A stretch of 64,000 nt of DNA, taken from the sequence record OQ921725.1; one strand, given 5' to 3'. The position numbers and the translations under genes are program-made. Under the pieces are notes generated by a model. The model had not been told where the DNA came from, ran no database searches, and was given only the letters and a program-made list of their open reading frames with translations. Positions 43,278 to 57,599 of this stretch are shown here, piece by piece (the first letter of the stretch is position 1; each line of letters begins with the position of its first letter).

Positions 43278-43302
43278 GCTTCTCTCTCCTTCCGTCCGGT
43301 GT

Positions 43303-43344
43303 GCACTGGGCGCCGGGAACCCGTGGACCCCCGGCGCCTCGAAC
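43303..43344 (-). repeat. family-1 intergenic hairpin
   Basis: GCACTGG-GCGCCGGG..CCCGGCGC-CTCGAAC. Confidence 0.6.
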
Positions 43345-43352
43345 GCACCGGC

Positions 43353-43796
43353 TCAGAACCGCTTGCCGTCCCAGTCGATGAACTTCTTCGGGTCGTACGA
43401 CCGGATCCAGGCGAGTGCCGCCGCCTCGGCCACGGCCACGCGCTGCTCGTCCGTCCCGGGCCCGATGAACGAGTCCAGCGACTCGTACTTGATCTCCGAC
43501 CAGGTCGGGTCCCACTCGTCGGCATCCCCGGCGGCGTCGTCGTCGATCTCGAACCAGACCTGCGACTCGATCCCGAGGTTGCCCAGGTCCGGGCCGTAGC
43601 CCATGTGGACCTCGATCGATCCGACCTTCGCCTCGATCGGCCGCTCGGGGGCGTGGGCGTAGGCGTACACCGTGACCCGGGCGCCGGGGTAGTCCGGGTT
43701 CACGAACCGGACGCTGGCCGCCTTCCCGATCTGCGTGTCACCGCCCACGTCGCCGTCGTCCGACCAGACCTGACCGTGCTGCGTCCACTCACCCAT
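43353..43796 (-). CDS. hypothetical acidic protein
   Basis: GGAGAGG RBS. Confidence 0.75.
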   Translation of the reverse strand: MGEWTQHGQVWSDDGDVGGDTQIGKAASVRFVNPDYPGARVTVYAYAHAPERPIEAKVGSIEVHMGYGPDLGNLGIESQVWFEIDDDAAGDADEWDPTWSEIKYESLDSFIGPGTDEQRVAVAEAAALAWIRSYDPKKFIDWDGKRF

Positions 43797-43824
43797 GATC
43801 TTCTGCCTCTCCGTCGTCCTGGTC

Positions 43825-44046
43825 TCAGTCCCGGGGGCCCGGCTGCTGCGGGACCTTCGGCGTCTGCGGCGGGGGCGTCTGGGGCCCCGGCTGCTGCGGG
43901 ATGCGGCCCGTGACGACGGGCGTGGCCAGCCGGTTCACGGTGCACGGGTTCGAGCACTGCGACGTGCACGAGTGGTTCCATTCGGCGCGGATCTCGATCG
44001 TCCCGTTCAGCTCCGGCGCCCGTTCCTTCGTGAGCGTGAGGGTCAC
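43825..44046 (-). CDS. small protein with Cys motif and Pro/Gln repeat tail
   Basis: HSC..QC..PC; PQQPGP repeated. Confidence 0.65.
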   Translation of the reverse strand: MTLTLTKERAPELNGTIEIRAEWNHSCTSQCSNPCTVNRLATPVVTGRIPQQPGPQTPPPQTPKVPQQPGPRD

Positions 44047-44062
44047 GTCCCACTCCCTTCTC

Positions 44063-44431
44063 TCAGTGCCTGACGGCCTCGGTCCAGCTCTCCCGGGTGC
44101 GGATCAGCGTCCCCTCCCGGTCGAACTGAAGAATGTCCACTTGGTTCTCGTTGAGGAACTTCCCGTCCAGGGAGTCCCGTACGGCGGTCGCCTTCCCGGC
44201 GACGATCTCCTCGCCGTCCTTCATGCGGATGGCCTCAACGAGGTACCGCATGGGGTAGTTCTCGGCAGCACCCGGAACCCCGCACATCCAGGTCCAGTGC
44301 AGCAGCGCCGCATGTGCGGCCCATGTCCCACTGGCCCCGTACCGGAAGGTGATCAGCCCTTCCAGGGTCTGTGACCACGCCTCCCCGTGCCTCCGGGTGA
44401 ACCGCACCCGCCAGACGTCCTGTTCGTGCAT
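44063..44431 (-). CDS. hypothetical protein
   Basis: GGAAGGGAGAG RBS. Confidence 0.7.
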   Translation of the reverse strand: MHEQDVWRVRFTRRHGEAWSQTLEGLITFRYGASGTWAAHAALLHWTWMCGVPGAAENYPMRYLVEAIRMKDGEEIVAGKATAVRDSLDGKFLNENQVDILQFDREGTLIRTRESWTEAVRH

Positions 44432-44491
44432 GTCTCTCCCTTCCGGGGGGCGACCGGTCTCCCGGCCGCCCCGAGCGGCGCCGTCGGCCCG

Positions 44492-44617
44492 CTACTTCTT
44501 GTCGGCGTCCATCTTCTGCGCGTTCTCCGGGGTGACCGCGATGGCCTCCGGCGGCGGCTGGTCGGCCGGGACCGGAACGTTGATCATGTCCGGCACCTCG
44601 GGCTTCTCCTGCGTCAT
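44492..44617 (-). CDS. 41-aa Pro-rich peptide (not in ORF track)
   Basis: GGAAGAGGGAGAAG RBS; MTQEKPEVPDMINVPVPADQPPP... Confidence 0.6.
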   Translation of the reverse strand: MTQEKPEVPDMINVPVPADQPPPEAIAVTPENAQKMDADKK

Positions 44618-44678
44618 GCTCTTCTCCCTCTTCCGAGTGCAGTTCTCTGTCATCGGGATCGTGCTGTCGCTCGGCAGG

Positions 44679-44747
44679 TCAGCCGTTCAGCCTCCGCAGG
44701 ATCTCGTCGGCCTCGCGGCCCGCCTTCTCCCACTCGTCCTCGCTCAT
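44679..44747 (-). CDS. 22-aa peptide MSEDEWEKAGREADEILRRLNG (not in ORF track)
   Basis: GGAAGGGAGG RBS. Confidence 0.5.
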   Translation of the reverse strand: MSEDEWEKAGREADEILRRLNG

Positions 44748-44780
44748 CACGATCACCTCCCTTCCGCTCACACCGCCCAC

Positions 44781-44833
44781 GAGCGGCGCTCTCGGGCCCC
44801 CGGCCGAAGCCGGTTGCCCTGGGGCGCATCCCG
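44781..44833 (-). repeat. family-2 intergenic hairpin (variant)
   Basis: GAGCGGCGCTCTCGGG..hairpin..CCCTGGGGCGCATCCCG. Confidence 0.65.
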
Positions 44834-45181
44834 TCAGGCCGGAGCGGAACCGCTGCGGATCAGGCTGGACACGAAGTCCAGCAGCTCGGCCGCGTCGGTC
44901 GGCAGCTCACCGCCCGGGGCCAGCTTCTTCAGCAGCTCGACCGCCAGGTGCTCGGCCTGGTCCCGGCGCAGGGCGGTCACCGGGGCCGTGGTCCCGTAGT
45001 AGCCGGGGTACGGGAACGCGAAGTCCCCACTCCGGCACAGGCCGCCGATGATGATGTCGAAGCTGTGTCCCTGCATGCTCCGCTCGTTGCGCTGCCGGAC
45101 GTGCCGCTCCGCCGCGTTCAGGTACTCCTCCGGCGTGGCCACCCACGCACGTCCCTCTTTCAGGCCCTCACTCGTCAGCAT
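44834..45181 (-). CDS. hypothetical protein
   Basis: GGAGAGGGAGAAG RBS before ATG 45181. Confidence 0.7.
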   Translation of the reverse strand: MLTSEGLKEGRAWVATPEEYLNAAERHVRQRNERSMQGHSFDIIIGGLCRSGDFAFPYPGYYGTTAPVTALRRDQAEHLAVELLKKLAPGGELPTDAAELLDFVSSLIRSGSAPA

Positions 45182-45207
45182 CTTCTCCCTCTCCGTCCCA
45201 CTCGATC

Positions 45208-45260
45208 GAGCGGCACTCCCGGGTGACCGGCCGGAGCCGGTCACCCTAGGGCGCATCCCG
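45208..45260 (-). repeat. family-2 intergenic hairpin
   Basis: GAGCGGCACTCCC-GGGTGACCGGC-CGGA-GCCGGTCACCC-TAGGGCGCATCCCG. Confidence 0.75.
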
Positions 45261-45261
45261 T

Positions 45262-45585
45262 TCAGAGGTTCGCACCGCACAGGTGGCACGCCTTGCCGTC
45301 ACCGTGCGCACCCCGGCCGTGGCCGATCCCGAACCGGCTGACCGTCTTCTTCAGCCGTTCCTCCTTCACGCCGACCAGCGGGTTGTTCCCGACGCTGTAC
45401 AGCGTGTACGCCACCAGGGCCGGGCCGCCGTCCTCGATCACGGCGTCGTACCCCCGCACGTAGCCGCTCAGGAACGGCAGGCGCAGGGCCGACGGAGATC
45501 CGGGGTCGATGTCGATCGTGACGTGGTCGCCGTCCTGGTAGGCCAGCTCCGTACCGTCCGGCAGAGTCCAGTTGTTGCCGCTCAC
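45262..45585 (-). CDS. hypothetical protein
   Basis: GGAGGAGG RBS; C-terminal CHLC. Confidence 0.7.
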   Translation of the reverse strand: MSGNNWTLPDGTELAYQDGDHVTIDIDPGSPSALRLPFLSGYVRGYDAVIEDGGPALVAYTLYSVGNNPLVGVKEERLKKTVSRFGIGHGRGAHGDGKACHLCGANL

Positions 45586-45890
45586 AGGGGGTCCTCCTCC
45601 ACCGAAAGGCTGGTACCGAAGCTGATCGTGCACTCGTACGTGCCGGGGTCGCTCCAGTTCCCGGACTGCTCGAACTGGAGCACCAGGCCCGGCGCGTTCA
45701 CCTCCTGACACAGGGCCTTCGCGTCGGCCATCGCCAGGGCACGGGCGCGAACGGTCACGTACGTCCCCTCGTTCGGGCCGGTCACCTTGATGTCGAAGCC
45801 GAACCAGTACGGTCCGACGTGACCCGGCGGCCTGCCCCGCAGGACCCGGGTCACCGTGAGCGGGGCGATCTCCCGCGTTTCCCGCTTCAC
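45582..45890 (-). CDS. hypothetical protein
   Basis: GTG 45890 coupled. Confidence 0.65.
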   Translation of the reverse strand: MKRETREIAPLTVTRVLRGRPPGHVGPYWFGFDIKVTGPNEGTYVTVRARALAMADAKALCQEVNAPGLVLQFEQSGNWSDPGTYECTISFGTSLSVEEDPL

Positions 45891-46477
45891 GCCTTGGCCT
45901 CCTCGGCGTACGGCTCGAACGCCTCGCGGGCCATCTCCTCGGCCGACTCCCGGCCGATGTAGCCCCAGCACGAGTCGACGTGCTCCCACTCGCGGGTCTC
46001 GTCGTCCAGCTCCGGGTCGTCGCGGTCCTCGGCATCCCGGGGGATGCGGGTCACGTCCTTCTCGACGATGTGCCCGTACACCTCACCCTCGGCCCACTGC
46101 TGGTACTCGTTCTGCTCCACCTCGATGAGCTGGGCGGCCGACAGTGCCGTCTCGGCCAGCTTGTCGGGCATCACGTACCACAGCGACCAGGCGCCGTTGT
46201 GCGGCCGGTGCTCGACGACGGTGGCACCGTGGAAGATCCGGGCCCACCGGGTGAAGACCGGGACCGCGTCCACGTACCGGTCCTCGATCCGCTCCCAGCC
46301 CTCGGCCAGCGGGCCGCCGTCCTTGTCGACGTCGATGTACCGCTGACCCTTCGGCGTGATCACGTTCGTCAGGTTGCAGTCCTGCTCGGTACGCGGGTTG
46401 CAGTCCTGCGAGTCCTGCTGAACAACCAGGCGCACCCGGTACCGGCCCGCCGTCTCCAGCACGTCCATCTCGGTCAT
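45887..46477 (-). CDS. conserved acidic hypothetical protein
   Basis: Y..W..GEVYG.I.E......DSCWGY.G motif recurrent in mobile elements. Confidence 0.75.
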   Translation of the reverse strand: MTEMDVLETAGRYRVRLVVQQDSQDCNPRTEQDCNLTNVITPKGQRYIDVDKDGGPLAEGWERIEDRYVDAVPVFTRWARIFHGATVVEHRPHNGAWSLWYVMPDKLAETALSAAQLIEVEQNEYQQWAEGEVYGHIVEKDVTRIPRDAEDRDDPELDDETREWEHVDSCWGYIGRESAEEMAREAFEPYAEEAKA

Positions 46478-46512
46478 CCCGTTCTCCTTCTCCGTTCCGG
46501 CATCGCCCGATC

Positions 46513-46564
46513 AGCGACACTCCCGGGTTCCCGGCGCTCGGCCGGGAACCCTAGGGCGTCTCCG
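46513..46564 (-). repeat. family-2 intergenic hairpin
   Basis: AGCGACACTCCC-GGGTTCCCGG..CCGGGAACCC-TAGGGCGTCTCCG. Confidence 0.75.
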
Positions 46565-46565
46565 C

Positions 46566-47123
46566 TCAGTTGAAGGGCGTCAGCTCCAGTCGCCCGTTCT
46601 CCACGACCAGGGGGCGCATCGGCTCCCGGTCGGCCTCGGGGTTGTGCCCCCGGTCCTCGCACTCGCAGCCCTCGCCGTGCGCGAGGAAGTCGCCGCACCC
46701 GTAGCACCAGATGCAGGACGACGGGTCGTCCAGCGGCTTGACTGTGATCCGGACCGGCTCACCCTCGACCTCGACCACGAACCGGTCCCCGGCGAACACC
46801 TCGTCCCGGAGGATGCCGAGACCGAGGTTCAGGATGCGCTCCCGGCACTCGTCGAACCCGCAGCACTCGTACAGCGTGTGCGTGGAGCCGTTCGAGTAGA
46901 TCTCGATCTGCACCTCTTCGCCGTTCTCGGTCTGCCGGGTCAGCTTCACGCCGTCCCGCCCGACCGGCACGGCGTCGTGCGGGTGCCGTCCCCGGCTCCC
47001 GTCCGGGTGCACGTGGACGACCTCGCCGCCCATGTCGTGCTCGACCGTGGCCAGTTCACCGTCCCCGATCTCGACCCGGTCACCCCGGTCGAACATCTGG
47101 ATTCCGCGCAGCACCTGAGCCAT
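46566..47123 (-). CDS. hypothetical protein with SH3-like start and Cys motifs
   Basis: FDRGDRVEI....ATV; CC..C; CIWC..C...H..C.C. Confidence 0.75.
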   Translation of the reverse strand: MAQVLRGIQMFDRGDRVEIGDGELATVEHDMGGEVVHVHPDGSRGRHPHDAVPVGRDGVKLTRQTENGEEVQIEIYSNGSTHTLYECCGFDECRERILNLGLGILRDEVFAGDRFVVEVEGEPVRITVKPLDDPSSCIWCYGCGDFLAHGEGCECEDRGHNPEADREPMRPLVVENGRLELTPFN

Positions 47124-47124
47124 G

Positions 47125-47577
47125 TCACTTCTCCTCTTCCGTCACGTCCCACGTGAGTAGGAACGTTGCGAACCGGGGGTTATCCGGTCCCTCGTACCGA
47201 GCGTTCTCCTTGTTCGCCCATCCGGTGCGCTCCACGGCGGCCGGTGCGTCCCGGAAGGACCACACCCCGTCGTACTCGCTCCCGCCCACGTCGTTGACCG
47301 TGGGCTTGGTCCAGATGGTGTACTCCGTGGCCGAACTGCACACGAAGGCGTAGGCCCCGGCGTCCGGGGCCCCGGTGCTCTCGTCGGCGGGGCGGATCTG
47401 CCGGGTGACCCGGTACAGCGTGTCCCCGGCGCGCTTGTCGCCCGCCACGGCCGCCTCCCGGCTCTCGTACACGAACGGGCCGATCATGTCGCCGTCCCGC
47501 CCCTGTGACAGGTGGACCAGACCCCAGGCCATCCCGGGGTTCGGGGCCCACGTGTACCGGATCAGTTCCCCTTGCAT
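47125..47577 (-). CDS. hypothetical protein
   Basis: ORF, RBS. Confidence 0.7.
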   Translation of the reverse strand: MQGELIRYTWAPNPGMAWGLVHLSQGRDGDMIGPFVYESREAAVAGDKRAGDTLYRVTRQIRPADESTGAPDAGAYAFVCSSATEYTIWTKPTVNDVGGSEYDGVWSFRDAPAAVERTGWANKENARYEGPDNPRFATFLLTWDVTEEEK

Positions 47578-47590
47578 CCCGCCGCTCCCG

Positions 47591-47941
47591 TCAGTAGCTG
47601 TAGCCCTCGATGGTGGCCCGCTCGTACGCGCCGCCGTCCGACCTGGTCCACGAGGACAGCTCGTCGGCGACGTACTCCGAGGCGTCGTTGAAGTTCTTCG
47701 GGAACCCCTCGCCGTCCAGGTCGCCGTTCGTGCTGATCACCGCGACGCTGCCGTTGTTGCCGCTCTCGTCGGTGAAGTCCCGGCCCTTCTCGGCCGCCGC
47801 CTTGATCTCGTCGGCGTGCTCGTCCCAGAAGTCGCGCCGGATGACCTCGATGTACTCCGTGTCGACGGTCCACACGGCCGCCCACGACTCCGTCAGGGCA
47901 ACGCCGATCTCGTTCTCACCGTCGGTGACGTACGTCCCCAT
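47591..47941 (-). CDS. highly acidic small protein
   Basis: About 26 D/E versus 8 K/R in 116 aa; GGAGAGGGAGAAG RBS. Confidence 0.75.
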   Translation of the reverse strand: MGTYVTDGENEIGVALTESWAAVWTVDTEYIEVIRRDFWDEHADEIKAAAEKGRDFTDESGNNGSVAVISTNGDLDGEGFPKNFNDASEYVADELSSWTRSDGGAYERATIEGYSY

Positions 47942-47987
47942 GCTCTTCTCCCTCTCCGATTCAACTCACCGTCCGACACGGCACGTC

Positions 47988-48043
47988 AGCGGCCGATCCC
48001 GGAGGACCGGCCGCTCCCGAACCCGTCGGCCTAGGCCAGACTA
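47988..48043 (-). promoter_or_regulatory. -10 TAGTCT plus operator plus family-1-like hairpin
   Basis: CGGCCTAGGCCA 48027-48038 abuts AGACTA; hairpin ends in CTCCCGAAC. Confidence 0.7.
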
Positions 48044-48074
48044 GCGGCACCGTGCACGGGCCGCCACCCGGACA

Positions 48075-48347
48075 TCAGTTCCGTCCGGACTCGTACCACC
48101 CGAGCACCGTACGACTGCCGTCGTCCTGCTCGGTCTGACTCCACACGATCGACACGGCGCCGATCTCCCGGCCGCTCGAACCGTCGGGGAGCTGCGCCCG
48201 CAGCGGACCGCCGCGCACGGTCATCCCGGCGCTCACGCACGGGGCCAGCTCCGAGGCGATGCGGATCTGCGTGATCGGCTCCGCCCGCACCTCCCACTCC
48301 TCGTTCAGCTTGTCGTACGACGTCGCCGGGTATCGCCCTGTGGTCAT
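48075..48347 (-). CDS. hypothetical protein
   Basis: ATG 48347 coupled. Confidence 0.65.
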   Translation of the reverse strand: MTTGRYPATSYDKLNEEWEVRAEPITQIRIASELAPCVSAGMTVRGGPLRAQLPDGSSGREIGAVSIVWSQTEQDDGSRTVLGWYESGRN

Positions 48348-48673
48348 CGGCCCCTCTTCTCGTTCAGCCATGCGGCGGGCGGCTGGAAGGTGTACGTGCG
48401 GCTGACGTACCGCACGCCCGCCGTGGTGCGGCTCGTCGTCCCGGTCGGCACGGTGTACCGCCGGGCGGTGAGCCCGTCGATCTCCATGCCGTCCCAGTTC
48501 AGGCGCATGGTCGGGAAGCTGCGCCCCTGACTGGACCACGGGCGCTTCGGCCGCAGGACCAGGCCGTCGGCGTCGATCTTCTCGATCTTGACGATGTCCC
48601 GGCTCTCCGAAGAGTGCATGTGGTCGGTGATGACCACGTTCCAGTCCTCGGCGACGTCCTCGGGCAGGTTCAC
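48344..48673 (-). CDS. hypothetical protein
   Basis: GTG 48673 coupled. Confidence 0.65.
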   Translation of the reverse strand: MNLPEDVAEDWNVVITDHMHSSESRDIVKIEKIDADGLVLRPKRPWSSQGRSFPTMRLNWDGMEIDGLTARRYTVPTGTTSRTTAGVRYVSRTYTFQPPAAWLNEKRGR

Positions 48674-49227
48674 GCCTTGTCTCCCTTCAGCACGTCGCGC
48701 TCGGCGACGTGGGCGTACGTGATGGCCGGGGGCTTGGCGTTGAAGTGGCGGAACAGGTGGTCGTTCGACCGGGCGATGTACGCGTTCAGCGCCCGCTGCT
48801 CGTCGAAGGTGTACGTCCCGTTGCCCACCTCGCCGTACGGGTCGATGGTGTAGACCACGTACTCCCGCTTGTGGTCGGTCCACGCCAGGGCCGTGCCGAT
48901 GCGGTGCTCCCCGCTGCCCCCACCGTGGGCGTACTGCACGGCCAGCACGATGGAGCCGACGCCGACGATGTCGCCGCACTTGACCGTGCGGTATCCGCGC
49001 TGCGAGTCGAGCACGGCGATCAGCTCGTCCCGCTCTTCGTCGTTCAGCACCACGTGCTCGGTCTGCGTCCACGACGGGTGGCCCTCGTCGGGCACGGTCG
49101 CCTTGCCGATACGCAGCACGGCGTTCCCGGTGTTCGACTGCTCCACCGAACCGATCACGCTCGGGTTCGGCGCGTACTCCGACGGCCCCAGGGCCAGCCC
49201 CAGGATCCTCTTCAGCTTCTTGATCAC
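48670..49227 (-). CDS. hypothetical protein
   Basis: GGAAGGGA RBS before GTG 49227. Confidence 0.7.
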   Translation of the reverse strand: MIKKLKRILGLALGPSEYAPNPSVIGSVEQSNTGNAVLRIGKATVPDEGHPSWTQTEHVVLNDEERDELIAVLDSQRGYRTVKCGDIVGVGSIVLAVQYAHGGGSGEHRIGTALAWTDHKREYVVYTIDPYGEVGNGTYTFDEQRALNAYIARSNDHLFRHFNAKPPAITYAHVAERDVLKGDKA

Positions 49228-49314
49228 GTCTTCGTCCCTTCCGTCCGTCACGTCCCACCGTGGGACACAGGCGCGCACGAGCCCCCTCCCGTGCGCCCCT
49301 GAATCACGCGGTGA

Positions 49315-49554
49315 TCAGCCCTCCGGGATCTCGATCCCGTGCTCCGTCAGCAGCGCCTCAAGGGTGGCGATCCGCGTGCGCGCGTTGCGCTCCCGGCGCC
49401 CGGCGTTGTCCCGGGCGTACGACTCGGCCACCAGCACGGCCACCTCGGGGTCGCAGTCCTCCAGGTCACCGGCCGTCAGGCCGACCTCCCGCTCGTACCC
49501 CGGGTTCTCCTCCCGGTACTTCATGTCCATCATGTCGTCGTAGCTGCCGTGCAC
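49315..49554 (-). CDS. hypothetical acidic protein
   Basis: GGGAGG RBS; GTG 49554. Confidence 0.65.
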   Translation of the reverse strand: MHGSYDDMMDMKYREENPGYEREVGLTAGDLEDCDPEVAVLVAESYARDNAGRRERNARTRIATLEALLTEHGIEIPEG

Positions 49555-49555
49555 G

Positions 49556-50172: not shown

Positions 50173-50246
50173 CTTCCCGTTCTCCCTTCCGTGGTCCACG
50201 GTGGGGCACCCGGCCTCCCGGATGCCCGCCCGAAGCACGCGGATGG

Positions 50247-50765
50247 TCAGCGGCGGACGCACGACCCGTCGCAGTAGACCGTCTCCCCGATGCCCGCACC
50301 GGAGGTCAGCACGTCGTCCGTGTCGGCGTGACCCTCGCACGGGTTGTGATCGGCGCACCGCCTGACCAGGACGATGTTCCCGGCCGCGTCCGTGTCGACC
50401 TCGCACCCGTTGCCCTCGGCGGAGCACTCCATCCAGTCCCGCATGACGATGTACTCGCCCATGTCGACGTTGAGCACCCAGCCGTCGGGAAGCTGCTCAC
50501 CCAGGTACTCGATCGCCTTGTCGGTGATGCCACCCTGGCCCGTCATGGCCTCCAGCTTGTCCAGCTCGGCGTCCGACGCGCCGGAGTCGGACTCTCCCGA
50601 TGTGCGGTACCACTCGACGACCGCCGCGTCCTCGGCGTCCAGCTCCATCCCGTGGTGCACAGCGGTGTCGACGATGCGGTACGAGTTCGTCCACCCGGCC
50701 GCCCCGTCCAGCCAGCACCCGGCCTCGACCTGGTTGCCGTTCTCCAGTGTGATGATCTCCGTCAT
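50247..50765 (-). CDS. highly acidic protein with Cys-rich C terminus
   Basis: GGAAGAGGAGAAG RBS; ends PCEGH....IGETVYCDGSC. Confidence 0.75.
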   Translation of the reverse strand: MTEIITLENGNQVEAGCWLDGAAGWTNSYRIVDTAVHHGMELDAEDAAVVEWYRTSGESDSGASDAELDKLEAMTGQGGITDKAIEYLGEQLPDGWVLNVDMGEYIVMRDWMECSAEGNGCEVDTDAAGNIVLVRRCADHNPCEGHADTDDVLTSGAGIGETVYCDGSCVRR

Positions 50766-50806
50766 GCCCTTCTCCTCTTCCGTCGTGATCCGTCGTGTAC
50801 CGCTGG

Positions 50807-51214
50807 TCAGTTCCGCGCGTCGCCCTCGGCGGCGTTGATCAGTTCCTGAGCGCGGTCCCCGCCCCGCATCTCCCACTCGTGGTAGTCGATGCGCTCCCGG
50901 GCCGTCGCTCCGTAGCGGGAGTACGCCACCTGCACGGCCAGCAGGAACTCGCCGTCGTCCCCTTCGGGCTCGATGCCCATCAGGTGCAGGTACCGCATCG
51001 CGGCGGCCGTGTAGAACGCGCACGCCTGCCGGGCTCCCTGCGGTCCGTACCACACCCGGTCGTCCCGGGCGTCGGCGTACGACGTCCCGTGCTCCGGGTG
51101 CGAGCCGACCGGCCCCAGCTTGAACATGCCGCCCGTGATCTTCTCGACCCGGGCCGCGACCTCTTCGACGAACGCCCCCGTGAACTTCATTCGCGCAGCT
51201 TCCACCGTTTCCAT
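50807..51214 (-). CDS. hypothetical protein
   Basis: ORF; start uncertain (51205-51232). Confidence 0.7.
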   Translation of the reverse strand: METVEAARMKFTGAFVEEVAARVEKITGGMFKLGPVGSHPEHGTSYADARDDRVWYGPQGARQACAFYTAAAMRYLHLMGIEPEGDDGEFLLAVQVAYSRYGATARERIDYHEWEMRGGDRAQELINAAEGDARN

Positions 51215-51255
51215 CCTTTCCGTCCGGTTCATGACCATTCGACCGATCAGGAACA

Positions 51256-51305
51256 CACTGGAAGACTCGGAACCGGGCCCGAACCCGGCCCCGAATCCTC
51301 CCGAA
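51256..51305 (-). repeat. family-1 intergenic hairpin
   Basis: CACTGGAA...CTCCCGAA. Confidence 0.7.
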
Positions 51306-51314
51306 TGCCTCAGA

Positions 51315-51425
51315 TCACCCGGCCTTGCCGTCTCTGATCTTGCGTAGTCCCGCCCACAGGTACCGCAGGCCCATGCAGGCCAGCCCGCACCCGAAGTACA
51401 GGACGAACACGAGACCGAAGATCAT
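51315..51425 (-). CDS. 36-aa membrane peptide
   Basis: MIFGLVFVLYFGCGLACMGLRYLW; ATGA coupling. Confidence 0.6.
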   Translation of the reverse strand: MIFGLVFVLYFGCGLACMGLRYLWAGLRKIRDGKAG

Positions 51426-51688
51426 GCACCCGCCACCGTGAAGACGTACGTCTCCGGGGTGTCCCGGCTCCACAGCAGCCGCGCGCCGTCCGGCAGCAGC
51501 TTCCCGGCGACGATCTCCGCCGCCTCCCGGCCCTCCGTGAACCGGTCGCCGTCCTTGATCGGGGACGGAAGCCAGATGTGCGCTCCCGTCTGCCTGTCCG
51601 TGGCACCGAGGCCCATCGTCGGCGACCCGTTCGCCGTGTGCTGCTTGCGCCGTACGACGATCTCCCGGGGCCCGTTTCCGCTGCTCAT
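51422..51688 (-). CDS. hypothetical protein
   Basis: AAGGGAGAGG RBS before ATG 51688. Confidence 0.7.
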   Translation of the reverse strand: MSSGNGPREIVVRRKQHTANGSPTMGLGATDRQTGAHIWLPSPIKDGDRFTEGREAAEIVAGKLLPDGARLLWSRDTPETYVFTVAGA

Positions 51689-51714
51689 GCGTCCCTCTCC
51701 CTTGCCTGATCCGA

Positions 51715-52344
51715 TCACGAACAACCACACCGCGCGTACGCGGATACCGCCTTGCCGCACCCCGGGCACTCCTCCCATCCGTCCCGGGTCGGCCGTTGCA
51801 TCTCCATCACCAGGTCAGCGCCCGAATCCGGACACCCGCACCCGGCCGTGGGGTGCTTGACCTGAAAGCAGCTCCCGCATACCGGCCGGGGCGCCACCAC
51901 CAGAGGCGTACGAACCGCCGTGGTCCGGCTCCGTGGCGCCGGAGCCGGAACCGTACCGGACGGCAGGATGCGCAAGCCGTCCTTGACCAGCCGGACCACT
52001 TCGCCGTCGGCCGCCTCCCACGGGAGCCGGACCACGACCCCGCGCTTGCCTCCCGGGTTGACCAGCCACTCCTCATGAGGCGTGTCCAGTGGCCGGGGAA
52101 CCGGCTCCGTAGCCTTGCGCAGGAACACCCGCATGTAGCCGGTCTCGTCCGCGTCCGGCCACTCCCGGACCGGCCGATGCGCTCCGTACCGGGACGGCTC
52201 GTCTCCCAGGAACCAGGTCCGCCCGGCCCCAAGTTGGTTGCGTTCGAGCAGACATCGGCCCGCTTGCTCCCGTGACGGCAGACGCTCGACTTCCAGACCG
52301 GACGTCGGGGTGCGCGCGGTCGGAACGTAGATCGCGTACAGCAC
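51715..52344 (-). CDS. hypothetical protein with C-terminal zinc ribbons
   Basis: CGSC...H...GC.C and CPGC...RC.C. Confidence 0.7.
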   Translation of the reverse strand: MLYAIYVPTARTPTSGLEVERLPSREQAGRCLLERNQLGAGRTWFLGDEPSRYGAHRPVREWPDADETGYMRVFLRKATEPVPRPLDTPHEEWLVNPGGKRGVVVRLPWEAADGEVVRLVKDGLRILPSGTVPAPAPRSRTTAVRTPLVVAPRPVCGSCFQVKHPTAGCGCPDSGADLVMEMQRPTRDGWEECPGCGKAVSAYARCGCS

Positions 52345-52350
52345 TCCCGG

Positions 52351-52842
52351 TCAGCCCTCCTGCGGCTCACGGTGGACCAGGGCCCACCCGTACGCCTGAG
52401 ACTCGGGGTCGTAGTCGGCGTGTTCGCACCGCTCGTGCTCGTTCCACTCCGAGCACGGCATGCCGTCGTCCCCGGCGCCGCACGTGGGCGGGTGCATCTC
52501 GACCGAGACGATCGCCCACAGTCCGGGCGTCTCCCGCATGTGCTCTTCCAGGTCGCTCCCGAAGTGCTGCCGGTTCGACTCGAACACGAACAGCGAACCG
52601 GGGTCACCCCACCCCGTGAGAACCGACCAGCCACCCTCGACCGATTCGATGGCCGCCCGCTCGTGCTCTTCTAGCACGTCCGGCATGTCCCAGTCGCCCG
52701 ACCAGTCGATGTCGATCGACTCCGGCGCGTACTCGGCCAGCGTGGGCGGCGGGTACGCGGCCGTCTCGAACGTCCCGTCGGCCTTGACCAGCACGGGGAG
52801 CGCACTCGGGCCGTGCAGCAATTCGTCCAGCGTCTTGCCCAT
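52351..52842 (-). CDS. highly acidic hypothetical protein
   Basis: GGAAGGGAGA RBS before ATG 52842. Confidence 0.75.
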   Translation of the reverse strand: MGKTLDELLHGPSALPVLVKADGTFETAAYPPPTLAEYAPESIDIDWSGDWDMPDVLEEHERAAIESVEGGWSVLTGWGDPGSLFVFESNRQHFGSDLEEHMRETPGLWAIVSVEMHPPTCGAGDDGMPCSEWNEHERCEHADYDPESQAYGWALVHREPQEG

Positions 52843-52928
52843 GATCAAATCTCCCTTCCGTCCGGACCGTCCGGCACCACGGACCCGCACGGAGTTGCCC
52901 CCGTGCAGGCCCGAAGTACTGCGCTCCC

Positions 52929-53387
52929 TCACATCCACACCGGTACGATCCGGTGCCCCTGGTTGGCGTCCAGGAATTCCATCCGTTCCGCCCGGCCGCT
53001 CATCCCCTCCGCGTCCGTCGGCCGGTTCAGGGTCATGCGCAGCCGGGACAACGTGGTCCCTTCCAGAACCGGCGCGTCCCACGTCCACAGGGTGACCAGC
53101 CGAACCGTCTCGGTCGCTTCCGCCTCCCGGCTCTGCGAGACCTCACAGAACGAGCCCGGGATCATGTAGTGCTTGCCGATGCACACGCGCGGCTCGTCCT
53201 CGACCGCCTTGTGCAACAGGTCTTGCATGTGACCGAGGTGATTCGACAGGCCGATGTACCCCTGCCAGTCCGGATCCGTCCCGTCGCCCGTCTCGGGGGA
53301 CAGGAACAGGTCGGCCGCGCCCGCACGTCCCGCCGTCCACAGCCACCGCTTGCCCTCCGGGAGCCGGTACAGATACGTGTGCTTCAT
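52929..53387 (-). CDS. hypothetical protein
   Basis: ATGA coupling. Confidence 0.7.
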   Translation of the reverse strand: MKHTYLYRLPEGKRWLWTAGRAGAADLFLSPETGDGTDPDWQGYIGLSNHLGHMQDLLHKAVEDEPRVCIGKHYMIPGSFCEVSQSREAEATETVRLVTLWTWDAPVLEGTTLSRLRMTLNRPTDAEGMSGRAERMEFLDANQGHRIVPVWM

Positions 53388-53692
53388 ACCGGCGTCCTCT
53401 CGTCCATGCCCGGCTCCCGTACGCTCTCCGTGACCCGCGCCAGGAACGCGGCACTCGCCGCCGGGAAGTCGCCCGTCGCCATCGTGGCCCGGATCTCCCC
53501 GTCGTCCTTGACCACCCATACGCCGTAGCGCGGGCGGCCGTTCTCTCCCGTGCGCAGGGTCAGCAGCACACCCGCGAACCCGTAGCCACCGTGGAACACC
53601 TTGAACACGTGATGCACGTCGGCCCGCGCGTCCGCGATCTCGTCACCCGGCTGGATGAACGCTCGCACCCGCTCCGTCGTCGTCGCTCGCAT
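53384..53692 (-). CDS. hypothetical protein
   Basis: GGAAGGGGAAG RBS before ATG 53692. Confidence 0.7.
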   Translation of the reverse strand: MRATTTERVRAFIQPGDEIADARADVHHVFKVFHGGYGFAGVLLTLRTGENGRPRYGVWVVKDDGEIRATMATGDFPAASAAFLARVTESVREPGMDERTPV

Positions 53693-53778
53693 CTCTTCCC
53701 CTTCCCGTGGACCGTCACCACACGGACGGATGCGGGACCGTGGCCCCGCGCCCGCCCGAACAGCGGCGCTCCCTGATC

Positions 53779-54402
53779 TCAGACCGTCGGCCGGTTCGCC
53801 GTGATCAGGTCGAACAGCGGGTGCGGCTCCCACTTCCGGTTGCCGTCGGCGTCCACGCCCGGCGAGACGGGACGCTCACCCTTGCACTCCCGCAGCGTGC
53901 GGCGCAGGGTCGCAATGTCGACGTCCGTGTACGCCCGGATCAGGGCCAGGTCGATCTCCGTTTCCAGCATGATCCGGCGCGTCGCTTCCTGGTTCCCGCT
54001 CCGCCGGGCCGACTCCGCGTGCTCGTCGTTCGTGACCGTGGACAGGGCCAGGCTGAACTCCCAGTACCGCACGGAGTCGTCCACGAGCATCGTGTCCATG
54101 TCGCCCCCGCGCTTCACCGCGCGCAGGATCCGGGACCGCTCGATGATCAGGGCCAGGAACTTCTCCCGGTCCATGCCGTCCTCCCACAGGTCCGACCACG
54201 TCGGCCGGATCCCGCGCACGTCGGCCCCGTTCGCGTAGCTGTGCGCCATGTGCGCCATGTGACGCCACATGGTCACGGCATCCTGCGACTCCTGCCCCAG
54301 GTAGCCGGGCTGTCCCGGACCGGGGCGCCCGTCGTGCTTCCGGCGCGTGTTGCTGAGCAGTTGGGCCAGCATCTCGTGGAACTCGGCAACCGTACGACCC
54401 AT
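53779..54402 (-). CDS. hypothetical protein
   Basis: GGAAGGGAGAA RBS before ATG 54402. Confidence 0.75.
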   Translation of the reverse strand: MGRTVAEFHEMLAQLLSNTRRKHDGRPGPGQPGYLGQESQDAVTMWRHMAHMAHSYANGADVRGIRPTWSDLWEDGMDREKFLALIIERSRILRAVKRGGDMDTMLVDDSVRYWEFSLALSTVTNDEHAESARRSGNQEATRRIMLETEIDLALIRAYTDVDIATLRRTLRECKGERPVSPGVDADGNRKWEPHPLFDLITANRPTV

Positions 54403-54465
54403 GATGTTCTCCCTTCCGGCCGGGCCCGTGTGGGCCCGGCGTCCGTCCATGACTTCCGTGCGTCG

Positions 54466-54747
54466 CTACGCGGCGAGACCCATCCGGTACGGGTCCGGCG
54501 ACCACTCCCGTGTCTGCCCGTCGTGGTGCTCGTACATCACGGTGACGTCGTGAAGCGTCAGCTTCCCGTTCTCCGTCGCGTACGTGGTCCGGATCTCCAG
54601 TTGGGTACCGGAGTTCAGGTTGTTGCGCAGCCTCCCCGCGATCAGGTCGGCCACCTGTTCGTCCGTGGCGTACCGCAGGGGCACGTACTCACCCGTGATG
54701 CACTCCGTGCACCCGCAGTCCCACGGGTCAACGGCGATCAACTTCAC
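54466..54747 (-). CDS. hypothetical protein with Cys motif
   Basis: DPWDCGCTEC; GTG 54747 coupled. Confidence 0.7.
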   Translation of the reverse strand: MKLIAVDPWDCGCTECITGEYVPLRYATDEQVADLIAGRLRNNLNSGTQLEIRTTYATENGKLTLHDVTVMYEHHDGQTREWSPDPYRMGLAA

Positions 54748-55016
54748 AGTCCCGCCTCCCGCCGCATGTGGTCGTACTGCTCCCCGTCGATCACGTTCCG
54801 GTCGAACAGTTCGTCGATCGCCCTCCCGGTGACCCAATCGGCGTTCGTCGGGCGGTCGCCGTCCTTGACCGTCTCCATGAACGCGTAGACCTCCCGGAAC
54901 TCCGGGGTCACGTGGTCCCGGTCCCGGGCGATCGTGCGCAGGACGTCATCCGTCAGCTCCCGCATGTGGAGCGTCCCGGCTTTCGCGCCGGGGGAGTAGT
55001 AGGCGAACTCGTCCAT
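54744..55016 (-). CDS. hypothetical acidic protein
   Basis: ATG 55016. Confidence 0.7.
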   Translation of the reverse strand: MDEFAYYSPGAKAGTLHMRELTDDVLRTIARDRDHVTPEFREVYAFMETVKDGDRPTNADWVTGRAIDELFDRNVIDGEQYDHMRREAGL

Positions 55017-55018
55017 GA

Positions 55019-55456
55019 TCAGATCCCGTTGCTCTCGCGCTTCGGGCCCATGTTGGCCAGCCCGATCATCCCTCGGCACACCCGGCACGTCACGCCCGTG
55101 AGCGCCGTCCCCGACGACCAGACCGACATGCGGTTCCCGAGGTTCCGGGACGCCGGGCACAGGCCCGCCGGAGGTTCGCCGGGCACCATGTTGAGCAGCG
55201 CGTGACCCTGCGTGTCCTTCCCGGGCACCTTGCCGTACTCCTGCGTGCGGAACGTGGCGATCCCGGTGATCAGGACCCCGTCCGCGTTCGGGAAGTGGCG
55301 CCCGCCGTCCGTGTCGTACAGGAACTGTTGCGGTTCCACCCGCCCGTCACCGCTCCCCGGCGTCCAGCCGTCCAGGTCGGCGATCACGAACCCTCCCGCC
55401 GTCTGAATCAGCGAACCCCGCGCGATGTCGTCGATCCTCTGTCGCGTCGTGTCCAT
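55019..55456 (-). CDS. hypothetical protein with C-terminal zinc finger
   Basis: H....LC....VTCRVC; GGAAGGGAGAA RBS. Confidence 0.75.
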   Translation of the reverse strand: MDTTRQRIDDIARGSLIQTAGGFVIADLDGWTPGSGDGRVEPQQFLYDTDGGRHFPNADGVLITGIATFRTQEYGKVPGKDTQGHALLNMVPGEPPAGLCPASRNLGNRMSVWSSGTALTGVTCRVCRGMIGLANMGPKRESNGI

Positions 55457-55480
55457 TCCGTTCTCCCTTCCGTCCGGTCA

Positions 55481-55527
55481 TGCACTGGAATGCCGGTCCC
55501 CCTCCGGCACTCCCGAACGCGACCGCG
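55481..55527 (-). repeat. family-1 intergenic hairpin
   Basis: TGCACTGGAATGCCGG-TCCCCT-CCGGCACTCCCGAACGCGACCGC. Confidence 0.8.
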
Positions 55528-55863
55528 TCAGATCGGGCGTTCGACACAGAGCAAGTCGACCTTGTGCAGGTAGACCGACTCTTCCGTGTCGTCGTCGTTC
55601 TTGAACGTGACCGTGATCGTCCCGGGGTCCGCGTCGCCGCCGGTCCTCTCGACCTTGACGATCTCCCGCATCTGGTCACGGCTCCCGTACGCACGCCACG
55701 TGTCCGTGGGCGGGTGCATGTACCCGGCCCGCGTCCGCGTGATCCGGGGCCGGATGTTCTCGGCGTCCATCCCGCGCAGCCCGATGATCTTCTCGAACTC
55801 CCGCGCGTGCTCACTCGCCCGCGCGAGTGCTTCCCCGGGCTTCAGGTAGTCGTACGTCGCCAT
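55528..55863 (-). CDS. hypothetical protein
   Basis: GGAAAGAGGGAAG RBS. Confidence 0.75.
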   Translation of the reverse strand: MATYDYLKPGEALARASEHAREFEKIIGLRGMDAENIRPRITRTRAGYMHPPTDTWRAYGSRDQMREIVKVERTGGDADPGTITVTFKNDDDTEESVYLHKVDLLCVERPI

Positions 55864-55890
55864 GCTCTTCCCTCTTTCCGTCGTCCGGTC

Positions 55891-55942
55891 GTGCACTGGA
55901 ACGGGCGGGGACGGATCCCCGCACGCTCCCGAACGCGACCGC
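55891..55942 (-). repeat. family-1 intergenic hairpin
   Basis: GTGCACTGGAACG..GCGGGGA..TCCCCGC..CGCTCCCGAACGCGACCGC. Confidence 0.8.
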
Positions 55943-55953
55943 GCTCCGTTGCG

Positions 55954-56331
55954 TCAGTGCCCCGGCGTCTCGGCGAACGAGATCCCGCGCACCTTCAGCG
56001 CCGCCCGGATCCGGTTCTGTGCGGCGGTCGTGGTGGCCGTGTGGCTCACGTTCGGCACCACCCACCCGAACATCGGGATGGTGTACGCGATGGGCGTGTT
56101 GTAGAAGTAGATGATCTTGTCGGCCCGCGCCACCGACTCGTCCCACTCCGAGCCCAGCCACGAACCGGTCCGGCTCCCGGTGCCCCCGTCGGGCGCGTCC
56201 TGCGGGATGACGTCGACCGCGTCCGCTCCGCGCGGGCGCCGTCCGCCACCGTTCAGCGCCTTCCCCTCCCGCAGGACCGTGATGAACGTCTGCCAGCTCG
56301 GAAGGCCCGTGTTGTAAGGGTCACTCGCCAT
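55954..56331 (-). CDS. hypothetical protein
   Basis: Y.IY.Y.TPIA......W.VP...HT.TT..AQ motif; GGAGAGGGAGAAG RBS. Confidence 0.75.
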   Translation of the reverse strand: MASDPYNTGLPSWQTFITVLREGKALNGGGRRPRGADAVDVIPQDAPDGGTGSRTGSWLGSEWDESVARADKIIYFYNTPIAYTIPMFGWVVPNVSHTATTTAAQNRIRAALKVRGISFAETPGH

Positions 56332-56358
56332 GATCTTCTCCCTCTCCGCGTTTCCGTT

Positions 56359-56420
56359 CGGCCTAGGCCGTTGCCCGATCATAGACCGGCTGGAACGCCC
56401 GGAGGACCCGGGCGCTCCCG
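56359..56420 (-). promoter_or_regulatory. family-1 hairpin, -10 TATGAT and operator CGGCCTAGGCCG
   Basis: Operator 56359-56370; GGCTGGAACGCCCGG..CCGGGCGCTCCCG 56388-56420. Confidence 0.7.
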
Positions 56421-56444
56421 TCTGCCTACATCGTGACCTGTTCG

Positions 56445-56978
56445 TTACTTCCGGGGCATGTCCGCGATGCGGGTCAGCATCTCCGATACGTCGCCGTCGG
56501 ATCCGTCCCCGACCGTCGTGCGCTCCGGGTAGTGCTGCGCCGTGTCGTCGAACACCCACCCGTGCCGGTCCGCCGCGTCCTCCCGGATCGCCGCGAACTC
56601 CGAGTGAATGAACCCGGATTCGTCCAGCTTCGACGAGACCGACACGCCGCGCCCGTTCGCGCACCACAGCTTCACGGCCGCGCCCCGTTCGCCGTTCCCG
56701 TCCACCCATGTGCGCGGGCCGTCCACGCTCACGCTGTGGCGCAGGGACATGCGGGCGCCCATGTTGATCAGCTCCCGCGCCATGTGGTCGGCCAGGGTCA
56801 TCCCGTCGGCCACGACGTCCACCTTCGACCGGTCGACGTCGTACCCCTCGACCATGAGCCACGAGCGCACGGCCGCGACCGCTTCCGCGCGTCCCGGCGC
56901 TTCGAACTCCCGCACGTGATACGCGCCGAACCCGGAGCCCTCCCGGTAGACCGTGATCTTGATTCCGTACGGCTTCAT
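56445..56978 (-). CDS. hypothetical protein
   Basis: GGATGGGAGAA RBS before MMKPYG. Confidence 0.75.
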   Translation of the reverse strand: MKPYGIKITVYREGSGFGAYHVREFEAPGRAEAVAAVRSWLMVEGYDVDRSKVDVVADGMTLADHMARELINMGARMSLRHSVSVDGPRTWVDGNGERGAAVKLWCANGRGVSVSSKLDESGFIHSEFAAIREDAADRHGWVFDDTAQHYPERTTVGDGSDGDVSEMLTRIADMPRK

Positions 56979-57015
56979 CATTCCCGTTTCTCCCATCCGT
57001 CGGTCCCGATAAGCA

Positions 57016-57052
57016 GGCTGGAACGCGCGGGCCCCCTTCCCGCGCGCTCCCG
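57016..57052 (-). repeat. family-1 intergenic hairpin
   Basis: GGCTGGAACGCGCGGG..CCCGCGCGCTCCCG. Confidence 0.75.
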
Positions 57053-57597: not shown

Positions 57598-57599
57598 CG

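Follow-up and report, generated by a model that had tools for sequence, protein, structure and literature searches.

Streptomyces phage Frankenweenie (OQ921725) is a lytic member of cluster BM, and the window analysed here is the last 64 kb of its genome. Near the right end of this window, in an arm that we assume to be an early region, eleven copies of an imperfect hairpin (family 1) lie in gaps between small genes, all of them within 43.3-57.1 kb and on the minus (mRNA) strand. They comprise the seven 'strict' and four 'looser' sites listed in a first-pass annotation, each present at its place and all belonging to one family. A covariance model (CM) was built from fourteen seeds (six window sites and eight copies from relatives) and recovered the remaining five window sites, though these had been left out of the seed. 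CM scores are 54.8-70 bits for the six seed copies (E 1e-12 to 1e-17) and 15.5-25.9 bits for the five others. A strict sequence pattern gave four matches on the minus strand and zero on the plus strand, the CM reached about 19 bits antisense versus 79 bits sense, and strong CM matches were found neither in the remaining 136 kb of the Frankenweenie genome nor in phage phiC31, where the best hit (17.6 bits) lies within a CDS and no family-1 copy was detected; chance is thereby excluded. The bacterial genomes searched yielded no copy either. The family is phage-specific, and every BM-like relative carries it, down to distant ones with just 30-60% protein identity. Among 4227 curated Rfam covariance models only a tRNA reached its gathering score, and the single sub-threshold match within 43-59.5 kb was a spurious microRNA model, in agreement with the earlier remark that the element was not recognised from any described family. 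The hairpins are real, structurally selected and undescribed.

Two copies are of subtype B (5' GACG ... AGCC 3'). The copy at 57002..57067 (genes 361/360; R1 58.0 bits) begins 3 nt past the stop codon, and its MFE structure is a 25-bp imperfect hairpin of -41.9 kcal/mol in the sense orientation versus -34.2 antisense. The second, at 56374..56435 (genes 360/359; R1 54.8 bits), reads TATGAT...GGCCTAGGCC followed by a Shine-Dalgarno sequence (SD) on its 3' side, and is 98-100% identical in Kela, JustBecause, Satis and IMG/VR contigs despite different flanking genes; the ANI of Satis versus JustBecause is 74.4% (PMC6687918). Subtype A (5' TTCG ... AGTG 3') is found at 55880..55946 (genes 359/358; R1 70.0 bits), 55469..55530 (genes 358/357; R1 67.4 bits), 51242..51318 (genes 348/347; R1 64.3 bits) and 43290..43356 (genes 328/327; TTCGAGGCGCC ... 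GGCGCCCAGTG; R1 67.8 bits). At 55469..55530 the TGA stop sits within the 5' outer arm, while the copy at 51242..51318 has the longest inner stem (19 bp) and nine G.U pairs, folding at -46.1 kcal/mol sense versus -26.6 antisense. The copy at 47967..48034, upstream of gene 339, has a divergent 3' side (GGTTCGGGAGCGGCCGG ... CCGGCCGCTGACGTGCC; R1 19.9 bits, E 0.017), is immediately preceded by TAGTCTGGCCTAGGCC and folds at -43.2 kcal/mol sense versus -31.7 antisense. Four looser elements complete the set. These are 53707..53773 (genes 354/353; TGTTCGGGCGGG ... CCGTCCGTGTGG; R1 18.3 bits, E 0.049, non-seed; R2 32.4 bits; -43.8 kcal/mol sense versus -29.3 antisense); 52866..52926 (genes 352/351; CTTCGGGCC ... 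GGGTCCGTGG; R1 17.0, R2 41.7 bits), the helix of which is unbroken save for a U.U mismatch; 50183..50247 (genes 346/345; GCTTCGGGCGGGCA ... TGCCCCACCGTGG; R1 15.5 bits, E 0.35; R2 24.6), the weakest member, kept at the same position in relatives; and 49253..49313 (genes 343/342; GATTCAGGGGCGCACG ... CGTGCGCGCCTGTGT; R1 25.9 bits, E 2.8e-4, non-seed), with orthologues in all relatives. A borderline R2 match at 37060..37122 on the minus strand, an intergenic hairpin (GGCTTCCGGGGAG ... CCCCTCGGTGG), is a possible degenerate relative, and similar matches occur at 32509-32570, 26156-26217 and 39006-39058; all are intergenic and mRNA-sense, at 20-24 bits (E 0.02-0.13).

The consensus first proposed for the element, GGGAGYG-N-[ACG]TTCCAG, literally fits only four copies, together with 51302 loosely. 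The copies at 57016 and 56388 open with GACGGGAG, not TTCGGGAG, the copy at 43303 reads TTCGAGG...CCCAGTG, and TTCCAG is missing from the copy at 47988. The ends truly common around the stem are (Y)TTCG (or GACG) on the 5' side and NGTG (or AGCC) on the 3' side. The flanks then taken for spacers pair with each other, so that the element is larger, an imperfect hairpin that spans 60-77 nt and contains about 24 bp (on average 23.8 pairs per copy). An outer helix of 6-9 bp runs from the stop codon nearly to the next SD. It is followed by a conserved irregular core, made up of U.G or G-C, a 1x1 mismatch (U.U in 26 sequences, A.C in 12), an invariant C-G and usually G.A, and then by an inner stem of 10-19 bp that is free in sequence. 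The conserved halves are 21-51 nt apart with the covarying stem between them, and several loops are purine-rich, of the form A(A/G)GGGGG.

Covariation among the copies is strong. In a MAFFT alignment of the fourteen seeds, which was not fitted to any structure, 95.5% of cells are paired and two-sided changes occur in 14 of 19 pairs, compared with 33-48% paired in a control in which the partners were slid along the same alignment; RNAalifold independently gives the same fold. Across 40 distinct sequences, 94% of cells are paired and 17 of the 19 pairs show compensatory changes, with C16-G77 invariant. Stepwise changes of single pairs can be followed among orthologues (U-A, U.G, C-G; A-U, G.U, G-C). 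Those of 55469..55530 show the first series at one pair and, at a second pair, G.U to C-G, and those of 43290..43356 in Kela, JustBecause and Satis show the second series and C-G to G-C within the supposedly conserved stem base. All copies, across nine genomes or contigs, are sense-oriented. The mRNA strand folds better in 49 of 53 copies (-39.7 versus -31.0 kcal/mol, with 3.8 G.U pairs per element), although this strand is G-rich, which alone favours G.U pairing and a stabler sense fold. Covariation, a core invariant at 30-60% protein identity and strict mRNA-sense orientation bear out the suggestion of a recognised structure rather than plain terminators, and the hairpins very probably represent selected RNA-level structures that act in cis.

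Elements start at -4 to +9 nt relative to the stop codon (+40 in one case) and end 12-42 nt before the next start codon, with only the SD in between. On its 3' side the helix ends 2-10 nt short of the SD, which is unpaired in the MFE folds, and neither SD nor start codon ever falls within the helix. The statement of the first-pass annotation that no U tract is present is correct: when 47-64 kb was scanned for terminator-like sites, 0 of 11 elements were called and no U-tract terminator was found. The 3' flanks read GTGCA.GACCGGACGG. Canonical intrinsic terminators were rejected as a class for these elements, the GC-rich stem having no immediate U tract in 11 of 11. Stoperators of the mycobacteriophage L5 type, which are short asymmetric dsDNA operators of fixed length bound by a repressor, were also rejected because of the covarying stem of 21-51 nt between the halves and because the phage has no repressor (PMC10652959). 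A scan of 47-64 kb for sigma-70-like promoters gave zero sites. Promoter-like GGCCTAGG sites lie at 56367 and 48035, with seven copies in series between them; read-through would be required within this promoter-to-promoter interval, and co-transcription is proposed solely because promoters are absent. Solitary small RNAs are disfavoured, since a promoter and the space for one are both lacking. A division into one- or two-gene cassettes applies only at 55.4-57.1 kb; elsewhere 2-12 genes separate the copies.

Paralogous copies are 60-80% identical, with identical runs of up to about 10 nt, and positional orthologues are 81-100% identical; the copies are accordingly stable rather than mobile. Some gene changes are bounded by elements. 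In Kela, an unrelated gene replaces gene 359 while both flanking element-bearing spacers are still 96% identical, gene sets in the slot 56452-57007 vary among phages, and further changes end at 43356 and 51317. At Satis 41881-41946 the stem of one copy is joined with the flanks of another, and two neighbouring copies in V127 are 89% identical. Other indels, namely the insertions of Kela genes 321 and 323 and Frankenweenie gene 356, have no elements. Between Frankenweenie and Kela, eight of 21 gene-boundary breakpoints (38%) fall at element-bearing boundaries, which make up 11 of 34 boundaries (32%). Mosaic breakpoints appear to occur at gene boundaries generally, with no specific enrichment at hairpins.

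Several functions can be considered. Terminators or attenuators that lack a U tract, factor-independent or factor-assisted, could grade expression along the arm, with a phage antitermination function as a possible override. The hairpins are stable, GC-rich and directly follow stop codons, and U tracts are missing from many Streptomyces terminators. GC-rich intergenic hairpins without poly-U in the early region of the Streptomyces phage phiC31 have been reported as rho-independent terminators (Ingham, Hunter and Smith 1995, NAR 23:370, as cited in PMC3993855), a precedent by which family 1, in its presumed early region, might terminate partially. However, no copy resembles the phiC31 intergenic hairpins as judged by the CM search of phiC31, and mycobacterial RNAP required a U tract in vitro (PMC3993855). 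There is neither a promoter nor room for one between hairpin and next gene, efficient termination at seven copies in series would silence the distal genes, and a terminator would need no invariant C-G, preserved mismatch or irregular lower helix; termination is therefore unlikely, if still plausible. An operator, modelled on those of T4 RegA or coat proteins, would have a phage ORFan or host RNA-binding protein read the core and thereby regulate the flanking genes at the level of translation or decay. The invariance of the core in distant relatives while the stems drift would suit such a protein, as would the proximity of the helix to the SD, the purine-rich loops and genes 361-365, which open the arm, are conserved and have no known function. 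The SD and start codon nevertheless stay outside the helix at a varying distance to the start (12-42 nt), and no candidate RNA-binding domain was found in the annotation or among ten ORFs near the array, which had no Pfam match and no recognisable domains; we consider this role distinctly unlikely.

Shuffling of cassettes at the DNA level, through attC-like folded single-strand sites or PeSL-like homology patches, would account for the exchange of gene 359, the variable slot, the Satis hybrid and the V127 pair. Like integron attC sites, the elements are imperfect inverted repeats with conserved ends, a variable centre and conserved unpaired bases, and attC sites likewise stand one at each gene cassette in uniform orientation. 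Identity as attC sites is disfavoured, as the ends, (Y)TTCG or GACG on one side and NGTG or AGCC on the other, are not RYYYAAC/GTTRRRY core sites, and no integrase, recombinase (tyrosine recombinases included) or attI is among the 366 annotated features; the genome announcement also reports no integrase and no repressor (PMC10652959). The PeSL (promoter-early stem-loop) cassettes of T4-type phages, which combine a strong sigma-70 promoter with a terminator stem-loop (PMC2839356, PMC4122927), are similar in being repeated composite intergenic motifs from stop codon to SD, clustered in a hyperplastic region of small ORFans and flanking some gene replacements between relatives. Family 1, in contrast, carries no promoter, its paralogues share runs of about 10 nt whereas PeSL recombination uses about 100 bp, and its sites do not appear enriched for breakpoints. 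The stability of the copies, the indels without elements, the strand-specific G.U pairing and the strict mRNA sense suit an RNA rather than a DNA role, and recombination is improbable. The most improbable reading is that these are ordinary intergenic hairpins with no specific function, forming a family only by descent from one duplicated spacer. The same arm does hold many other intergenic hairpins of different sequence, and the borderline R2 matches grade into generic hairpins; against this stand the compensatory changes between orthologues, the core kept at 30-60% protein identity and the conservation, at up to 100% identity, of the 56374-56435 copy across genomes of about 74% ANI.

We read family 1 as a set of cis-acting structured RNA elements within putative polycistronic transcripts, and favour, with a probability of about 0.4, a role as RNase III-type processing and/or stability sites. 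Streptomyces RNase III (AbsB) has been described as processing polycistronic mRNA, and a cleavage assay with the purified enzyme is available (PMC2936110). Among the options first listed, the RNase III or T7-like one offers the best anatomical fit, owing to the helix of about 24 bp, the conserved internal irregularity and the stop-to-SD location inside putative operons; protein binding is possible, and solitary small RNAs and attC-like sites are disfavoured. T7 places an internally irregular helix of at least 20 bp between cistrons. The hairpins would act post-transcriptionally in leftward right-arm transcripts of cluster-BM Streptomyces phages, as sites of double-strand-specific (RNase III-type) processing and/or 3'-end protection. 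If the conserved irregular core, or a site close to it, were cut, the upstream message would keep the upper hairpin at its 3' end, and the downstream message would be freed, its leader short and its SD accessible, so that stability and dosage of neighbouring genes could be uncoupled, as in T7 early mRNA. RNase III is not listed in the phage annotation. Bacterial RNase III is not known to require a motif of the kind seen in the conserved core, which may therefore dock another protein instead.

By this analogy, the closest likeness is to the early mRNA-processing hairpins of phage T7, which family 1 most resembles. Conserved processing hairpins are known from the RNase III sites of T7 early mRNA (R0.3-R1.3) and from the early RNA of Bacillus phage SP82. 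As in these, a polycistronic phage transcript (presumed here) carries multiple related hairpins in its intercistronic gaps, each about two helical turns long and divided by a conserved internal irregularity into upper and lower stems; both T7-type sites and family 1 are hairpins that reach roughly 20 bp or more and are interrupted by an internal loop or mismatch. No U tract follows the hairpin, the downstream SD is free (in family 1, in the MFE folds), and sequence around the internal loop is common to the copies of a given phage. In contrast to T7, cleavage of family 1 is only proposed, the host is a high-GC actinomycete, and in place of a larger asymmetric loop the core has a 1x1 mismatch and G.A; neither T7 nor SP82 sites have sequence similarity to family 1. 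The REP/BIME elements of enterobacterial operons are transcribed, orientation-specific imperfect palindromes that shield upstream mRNA from 3' exonucleases, and share with family 1 a conserved base flanking a variable stem inside operons. REPs are host-borne, present in hundreds of copies and mobilised by RAYT transposases, whereas family 1 is confined to phages, in about ten positionally orthologous copies.

Bases 136049-200048 of Streptomyces phage Frankenweenie (OQ921725.1) match the window at 100% identity; Frankenweenie is a 200,048-bp lytic siphovirus of cluster BM with a prolate head and a 1,038-bp terminal repeat, which was announced as having neither an integrase nor a repressor (PMC10652959). 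The minus strand encodes all of genes 251-366 (13254-61326), nearly all of which, including every gene around the hairpin array, are annotated as hypothetical; Pfam and PHROGs searches with the ORFs around the array returned nothing usable. The label 'early' for this region is an assumption. The closest relatives are phages Kela and JustBecause (87-89% identity over alignable parts), with the Satis group showing patchy identity of about 83%.

The minus strand was read directly and every intergenic spacer of the right arm was folded, with most spacers longer than 50 nt found to hold GC-rich hairpins. The literal consensus proposed for the family-1 hairpins in the first-pass annotation matched four copies (57051, 56419, 55930 and 55514) and, loosely, that at 51302; it missed the remaining copies and had no plus-strand matches. 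Fourteen clear copies from Frankenweenie, Kela, JustBecause and Satis were aligned using MAFFT and made into a covariance model (R1), which was scanned against the whole 200-kb genome and the right arms of the three relatives. This model gave 55-70 bits for six Frankenweenie seed copies and recovered the unseeded copies at 49253-49313, 47967-48034, 53707-53773, 52866-52926 and 50183-50247 at 15.5-25.9 bits. As these five were found blind along with the seeds, the sites first proposed are real, and the family exists; the true element is larger than had been described and the signature common to its copies is narrower. The remaining 136 kb of the genome gave no credible R1 match. Strong matches were in the mRNA sense without exception, the best copies scoring ~79 bits in sense and ~19 bits on the reverse strand. 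A whole-genome search by mismatch-tolerant regular expression with a folding filter was discarded as too noisy, its pairing rule also losing true copies. A family-1-like hairpin at 28199-28265 (minus strand; R1, 20.1 bits) sits in the final 69 nt of gene 288, immediately ahead of gene 287 (ADP-ribosyltransferase); it may be a false positive or a family-1 copy embedded in coding sequence.

The full element consists of three parts, namely a 6-9-bp outer helix, an irregular core and an inner stem. In the MAFFT alignment of 14 copies, which was made without fitting to any structure, 95.5% of cells are standard pairs and two-sided changes occur at 14 of 19 pairs; pairing falls to 33-48% when the 3' partners are slid by 1-3 columns, and RNAalifold independently predicts the identical fold. 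The stretches on either side of the hairpin, previously taken for spacers, pair with each other in this alignment. When the comparison was widened to 40 distinct sequences (nine genomes or contigs), paired cells made up 94% and 17/19 pairs were compensatory. The C16-G77 pair is invariant in these sequences and the column beside it is always mismatched (U.U in 26 sequences, A.C in 12), giving two subtypes, 5'-UUCG...AGUG-3' (U.U) and 5'-GACG...AGCC-3' (A.C); most strong copies carry a G facing an A at the position after the mismatch. Compensatory changes can be followed stepwise in orthologues. One pair of the 55514-type copy is U-A in Kela, U.G in two IMG/VR contigs and C-G in JustBecause, and one pair of the 43352-type copy is A-U in Kela, G.U in JustBecause and G-C in Frankenweenie, with another pair of the latter copy flipped from C-G to G-C in Satis. 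These changes indicate that the GGGAG/TTCC base is kept by pairing and not by sequence; on the sequences compared, it is the small core that is kept by sequence.

As defined by the covariance model, the elements start between -4 and +9 nt relative to the upstream stop codon, which often lies within the 5' outer arm, the sole exception being 47967-48034 (+40). They end 12-42 nt ahead of the downstream start, in an interval holding only the Shine-Dalgarno (SD) sequence (GGAAGGGAG-like), which is unpaired in every minimum free energy fold. A sigma-70 and terminator scan identified no sigma-70-like promoter in 47-64 kb and only four terminator-like sites, none of them at the elements. Promoter-like sites in the arm are marked by a palindrome, GGCCTAGG(C/T)C, that follows -10-like hexamers (TAGTGT, TACGAT, TAGTCT, TAAGCT or TAGGAT) or spans a -35-like TTGACC; it was found at 58019-58024, 56362-56367, 48030-48035, 41394-41399, 35609-35614, 29018-29023, 25835-25840 and 24892-24897, the rest of the genome having ~17 more. 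There are 25 occurrences of CCTAGG in 200 kb, nearly always between genes, and the palindrome has the look of an operator at phage promoters of both arms. Between the promoter-like sites at 56367 and 48035 there are seven consecutive family-1 elements, so expression downstream requires read-through of the hairpins. Terminator-like hairpins of the form CGAGGGGC...GCCCCTTCGCTGT (24853-24954 and 35591-35679, minus strand), each then followed by a GGCCTAGG site, look like a terminator-then-promoter layout, unlike family 1.

Annotated GTG starts fall within family-1 elements for genes 358 (55896), 345 (50238) and 342 (49278), the start being the conserved 3' GTG of the element in genes 358 and 342 and lying in the 5' outer arm in gene 345. 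Downstream of each there is a better start with a strong SD (ATG 55863, ATG 50172 and GTG 49227, respectively), and the orthologues in Kela and JustBecause have been annotated with the same start calls; no fewer than three gene starts are corrected by the family-1 model.

Three BM-type IMG/VR contigs, found via the gene-364 protein, possess the identical element set, with order and sense unchanged. Two remoter large contigs (166.8 and 199.5 kb), whose proteins are only 30-60% identical to those of Frankenweenie, have CTTCGGGAG-stem-TTCCAGTGG elements between stop and SD. IMG/VR loci were compared with the genome by ORF-based tblastn, tblastx being discarded as dominated by compositional matches. 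Searching IMG/VR with the pattern TTCGGGAG-N10-40-TTCCAGTG gave more than 118 single matches, almost all due to chance, of which the covariance model retained only two (L012 and L063). Across 185,579 bacterial and archaeal genomes, only single matches at chance level were obtained, with none in Streptomyces; the 11 GTDB matches to a 20-base pattern, from unrelated taxa, were rejected, as their model scores (14-28 bits) reflect only the bases that the pattern demands. No family-1 element was found in phiC31 by model scan. With no matching family in Rfam and no mention in two BM-cluster genome announcements, family 1 is judged from its covariation to be a new structured-RNA family. Its setting is a little-studied clade of 185-200-kb Streptomyces phages with a right arm made up almost entirely of ORFans, and the model is usable as a marker of BM-like metagenome contigs.

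The mRNA strand folds more stably in 49 of 53 distinct copies, with a mean folding energy of -39.7 kcal/mol against -31.0 kcal/mol for the opposite strand, an asymmetry that the composition of a G-rich mRNA strand alone favours. Each element has ~3.8 G.U pairs among ~24 pairs, and these wobble pairs turn into C.A mismatches on the opposite strand. Given this sense-biased folding and the strict sense orientation of all copies, RNA is the best reading of the structure. One option first suggested was that the hairpins are recombination sites at which gene cassettes are shuffled. In alignments with relatives, several mosaic junctions coincide with the edges of elements: 43356, 51317 and 52932; 55972 and 56328, bracketing gene 359, which is replaced by an unrelated gene in Kela, with the spacers on both sides still 96% identical; and 56452 and 57007, bracketing a slot with differing gene sets among phages (gene-family strings, from our own ORF caller, which missed some annotated genes, serve as illustration only). 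Many other junctions are element-free (the Kela gene 323 insertion, Frankenweenie gene 356, 47143/47573), and between Frankenweenie and Kela 8 of 21 boundary breakpoints fall at element-bearing boundaries, which are 11 of the 34, representing no real enrichment of breakpoints at hairpins. Ordinary gene-boundary mosaicism, and not hairpin-specific recombination, is thus taken to explain why the region looks cassette-like. Copies are 81-100% identical to positional orthologues versus 60-80% to paralogues, whose identical runs are only ~10 nt; chimeras are occasional (the Satis 41881 copy and the two neighbouring V127 copies). The copy at 56374-56435 is 98-100% identical in all genomes, including that of Satis, whose ANI with JustBecause is only 74.4% (PMC6687918). 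This orthologue likeness and the near-identical copy show that the elements are old, stable and selected; that they are functionless is most improbable. No recombinase is present among the genome annotations, and family 1 differs from attC sites in the absence of core sites and integrase. The elements do not behave as mobile or site-specific recombination sites, and a primary role in DNA-level recombination is very unlikely, though they may act as homology arms in recombination between related phages.

In T7 early mRNA, RNase III sites are two-turn imperfect intercistronic helices with an internal irregularity. Family 1 combines a two-turn imperfect helix, a conserved internal irregularity, a stop-to-SD position, the lack of a U tract and a free SD; its architecture is the same as that of the T7 and SP82 early-mRNA processing hairpins, whereas cleavage is only putative in family 1. 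Streptomyces RNase III (AbsB) cuts stem-loops and has been described as a processor of polycistronic mRNA (PMC2936110). This T7-like anatomy, together with AbsB, favours the tentative reading (probability about 0.4) that the hairpins would be RNA processing and/or 3'-end-protecting sites inside operons. Partial termination at the hairpins is unlikely: hairpins of the phiC31 early region lacking poly-U have been reported as terminators (Ingham 1995, as cited in PMC3993855), but mycobacterial RNA polymerase requires a U tract (PMC3993855). Action of a specific RNA-binding protein on the hairpins is somewhat less likely again, and it is doubtful that the invariant core (C-G, U.U or A.C, G.A) is the docking site of a dedicated, unrecognised factor, for which a product of the conserved ORFans heading the arm (genes 361-365) may be a candidate. 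With such a factor, BM phages would control host-takeover genes through a sequence-specific system of their own for operon processing or translational timing, instead of borrowing generic host RNase III. A remoter variant of this reading would be a folded single-strand recombination site used by a non-canonical recombinase. Processing or stability sites, the preferred reading, would offer a first handle on the post-transcriptional organisation of actinophage early genes and a direct test of AbsB function in infection. T4-type PeSLs have the same genomic setting, but the promoter that defines them is absent in family 1; REP elements, attC sites and phiC31 early terminators are also among the closest known systems. 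Family 1 belongs with the intercistronic structured hairpins of phage operons, its core being unusually well defined. An N4-type hairpin promoter (no virion RNA polymerase; stems long and variable), a hairpin-split promoter (spacing varies by 30 nt) and a small RNA (no promoter) were rejected.

Hairpins of a second family, GCGCCCTAGGG-stem-CCCGGGAGTGCCGC (minus strand), were identified at 44781-44833, 45182-45261, 46478-46565 and 57476-57599. Two copies flank gene 333 (44834-45181); Kela has a single copy and no gene 333, which looks like deletion or insertion between direct repeats. A third intergenic family (minus strand; 21552-21638, 29309-29406 and 40583-40673), with no Rfam match, consists of CGAGGCCGAAACC, two hairpins and a 17-bp palindrome, CTGACGATGGCCGTCAG (CTGACGAGTCCCGTCAG in one copy), followed by the SD. 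Outside the window, the gene of a Ro-like RNA-binding protein adjoins a tRNA gene (record 90673-92620; L007 40673-42620); bacterial Ro acts in partnership with Y-like RNAs. The right end (61327-64000) is a non-coding 2.7 kb that includes the 1,038-bp terminal repeat, where GC drops to about 58%; it is dense in short direct and inverted repeats (e.g. GCGGGAGCGCGCGGG, CTGACCTGCGGAAAC and GTGTGACGCAGGTCACA) and is a probable location of early promoters and/or packaging signals.
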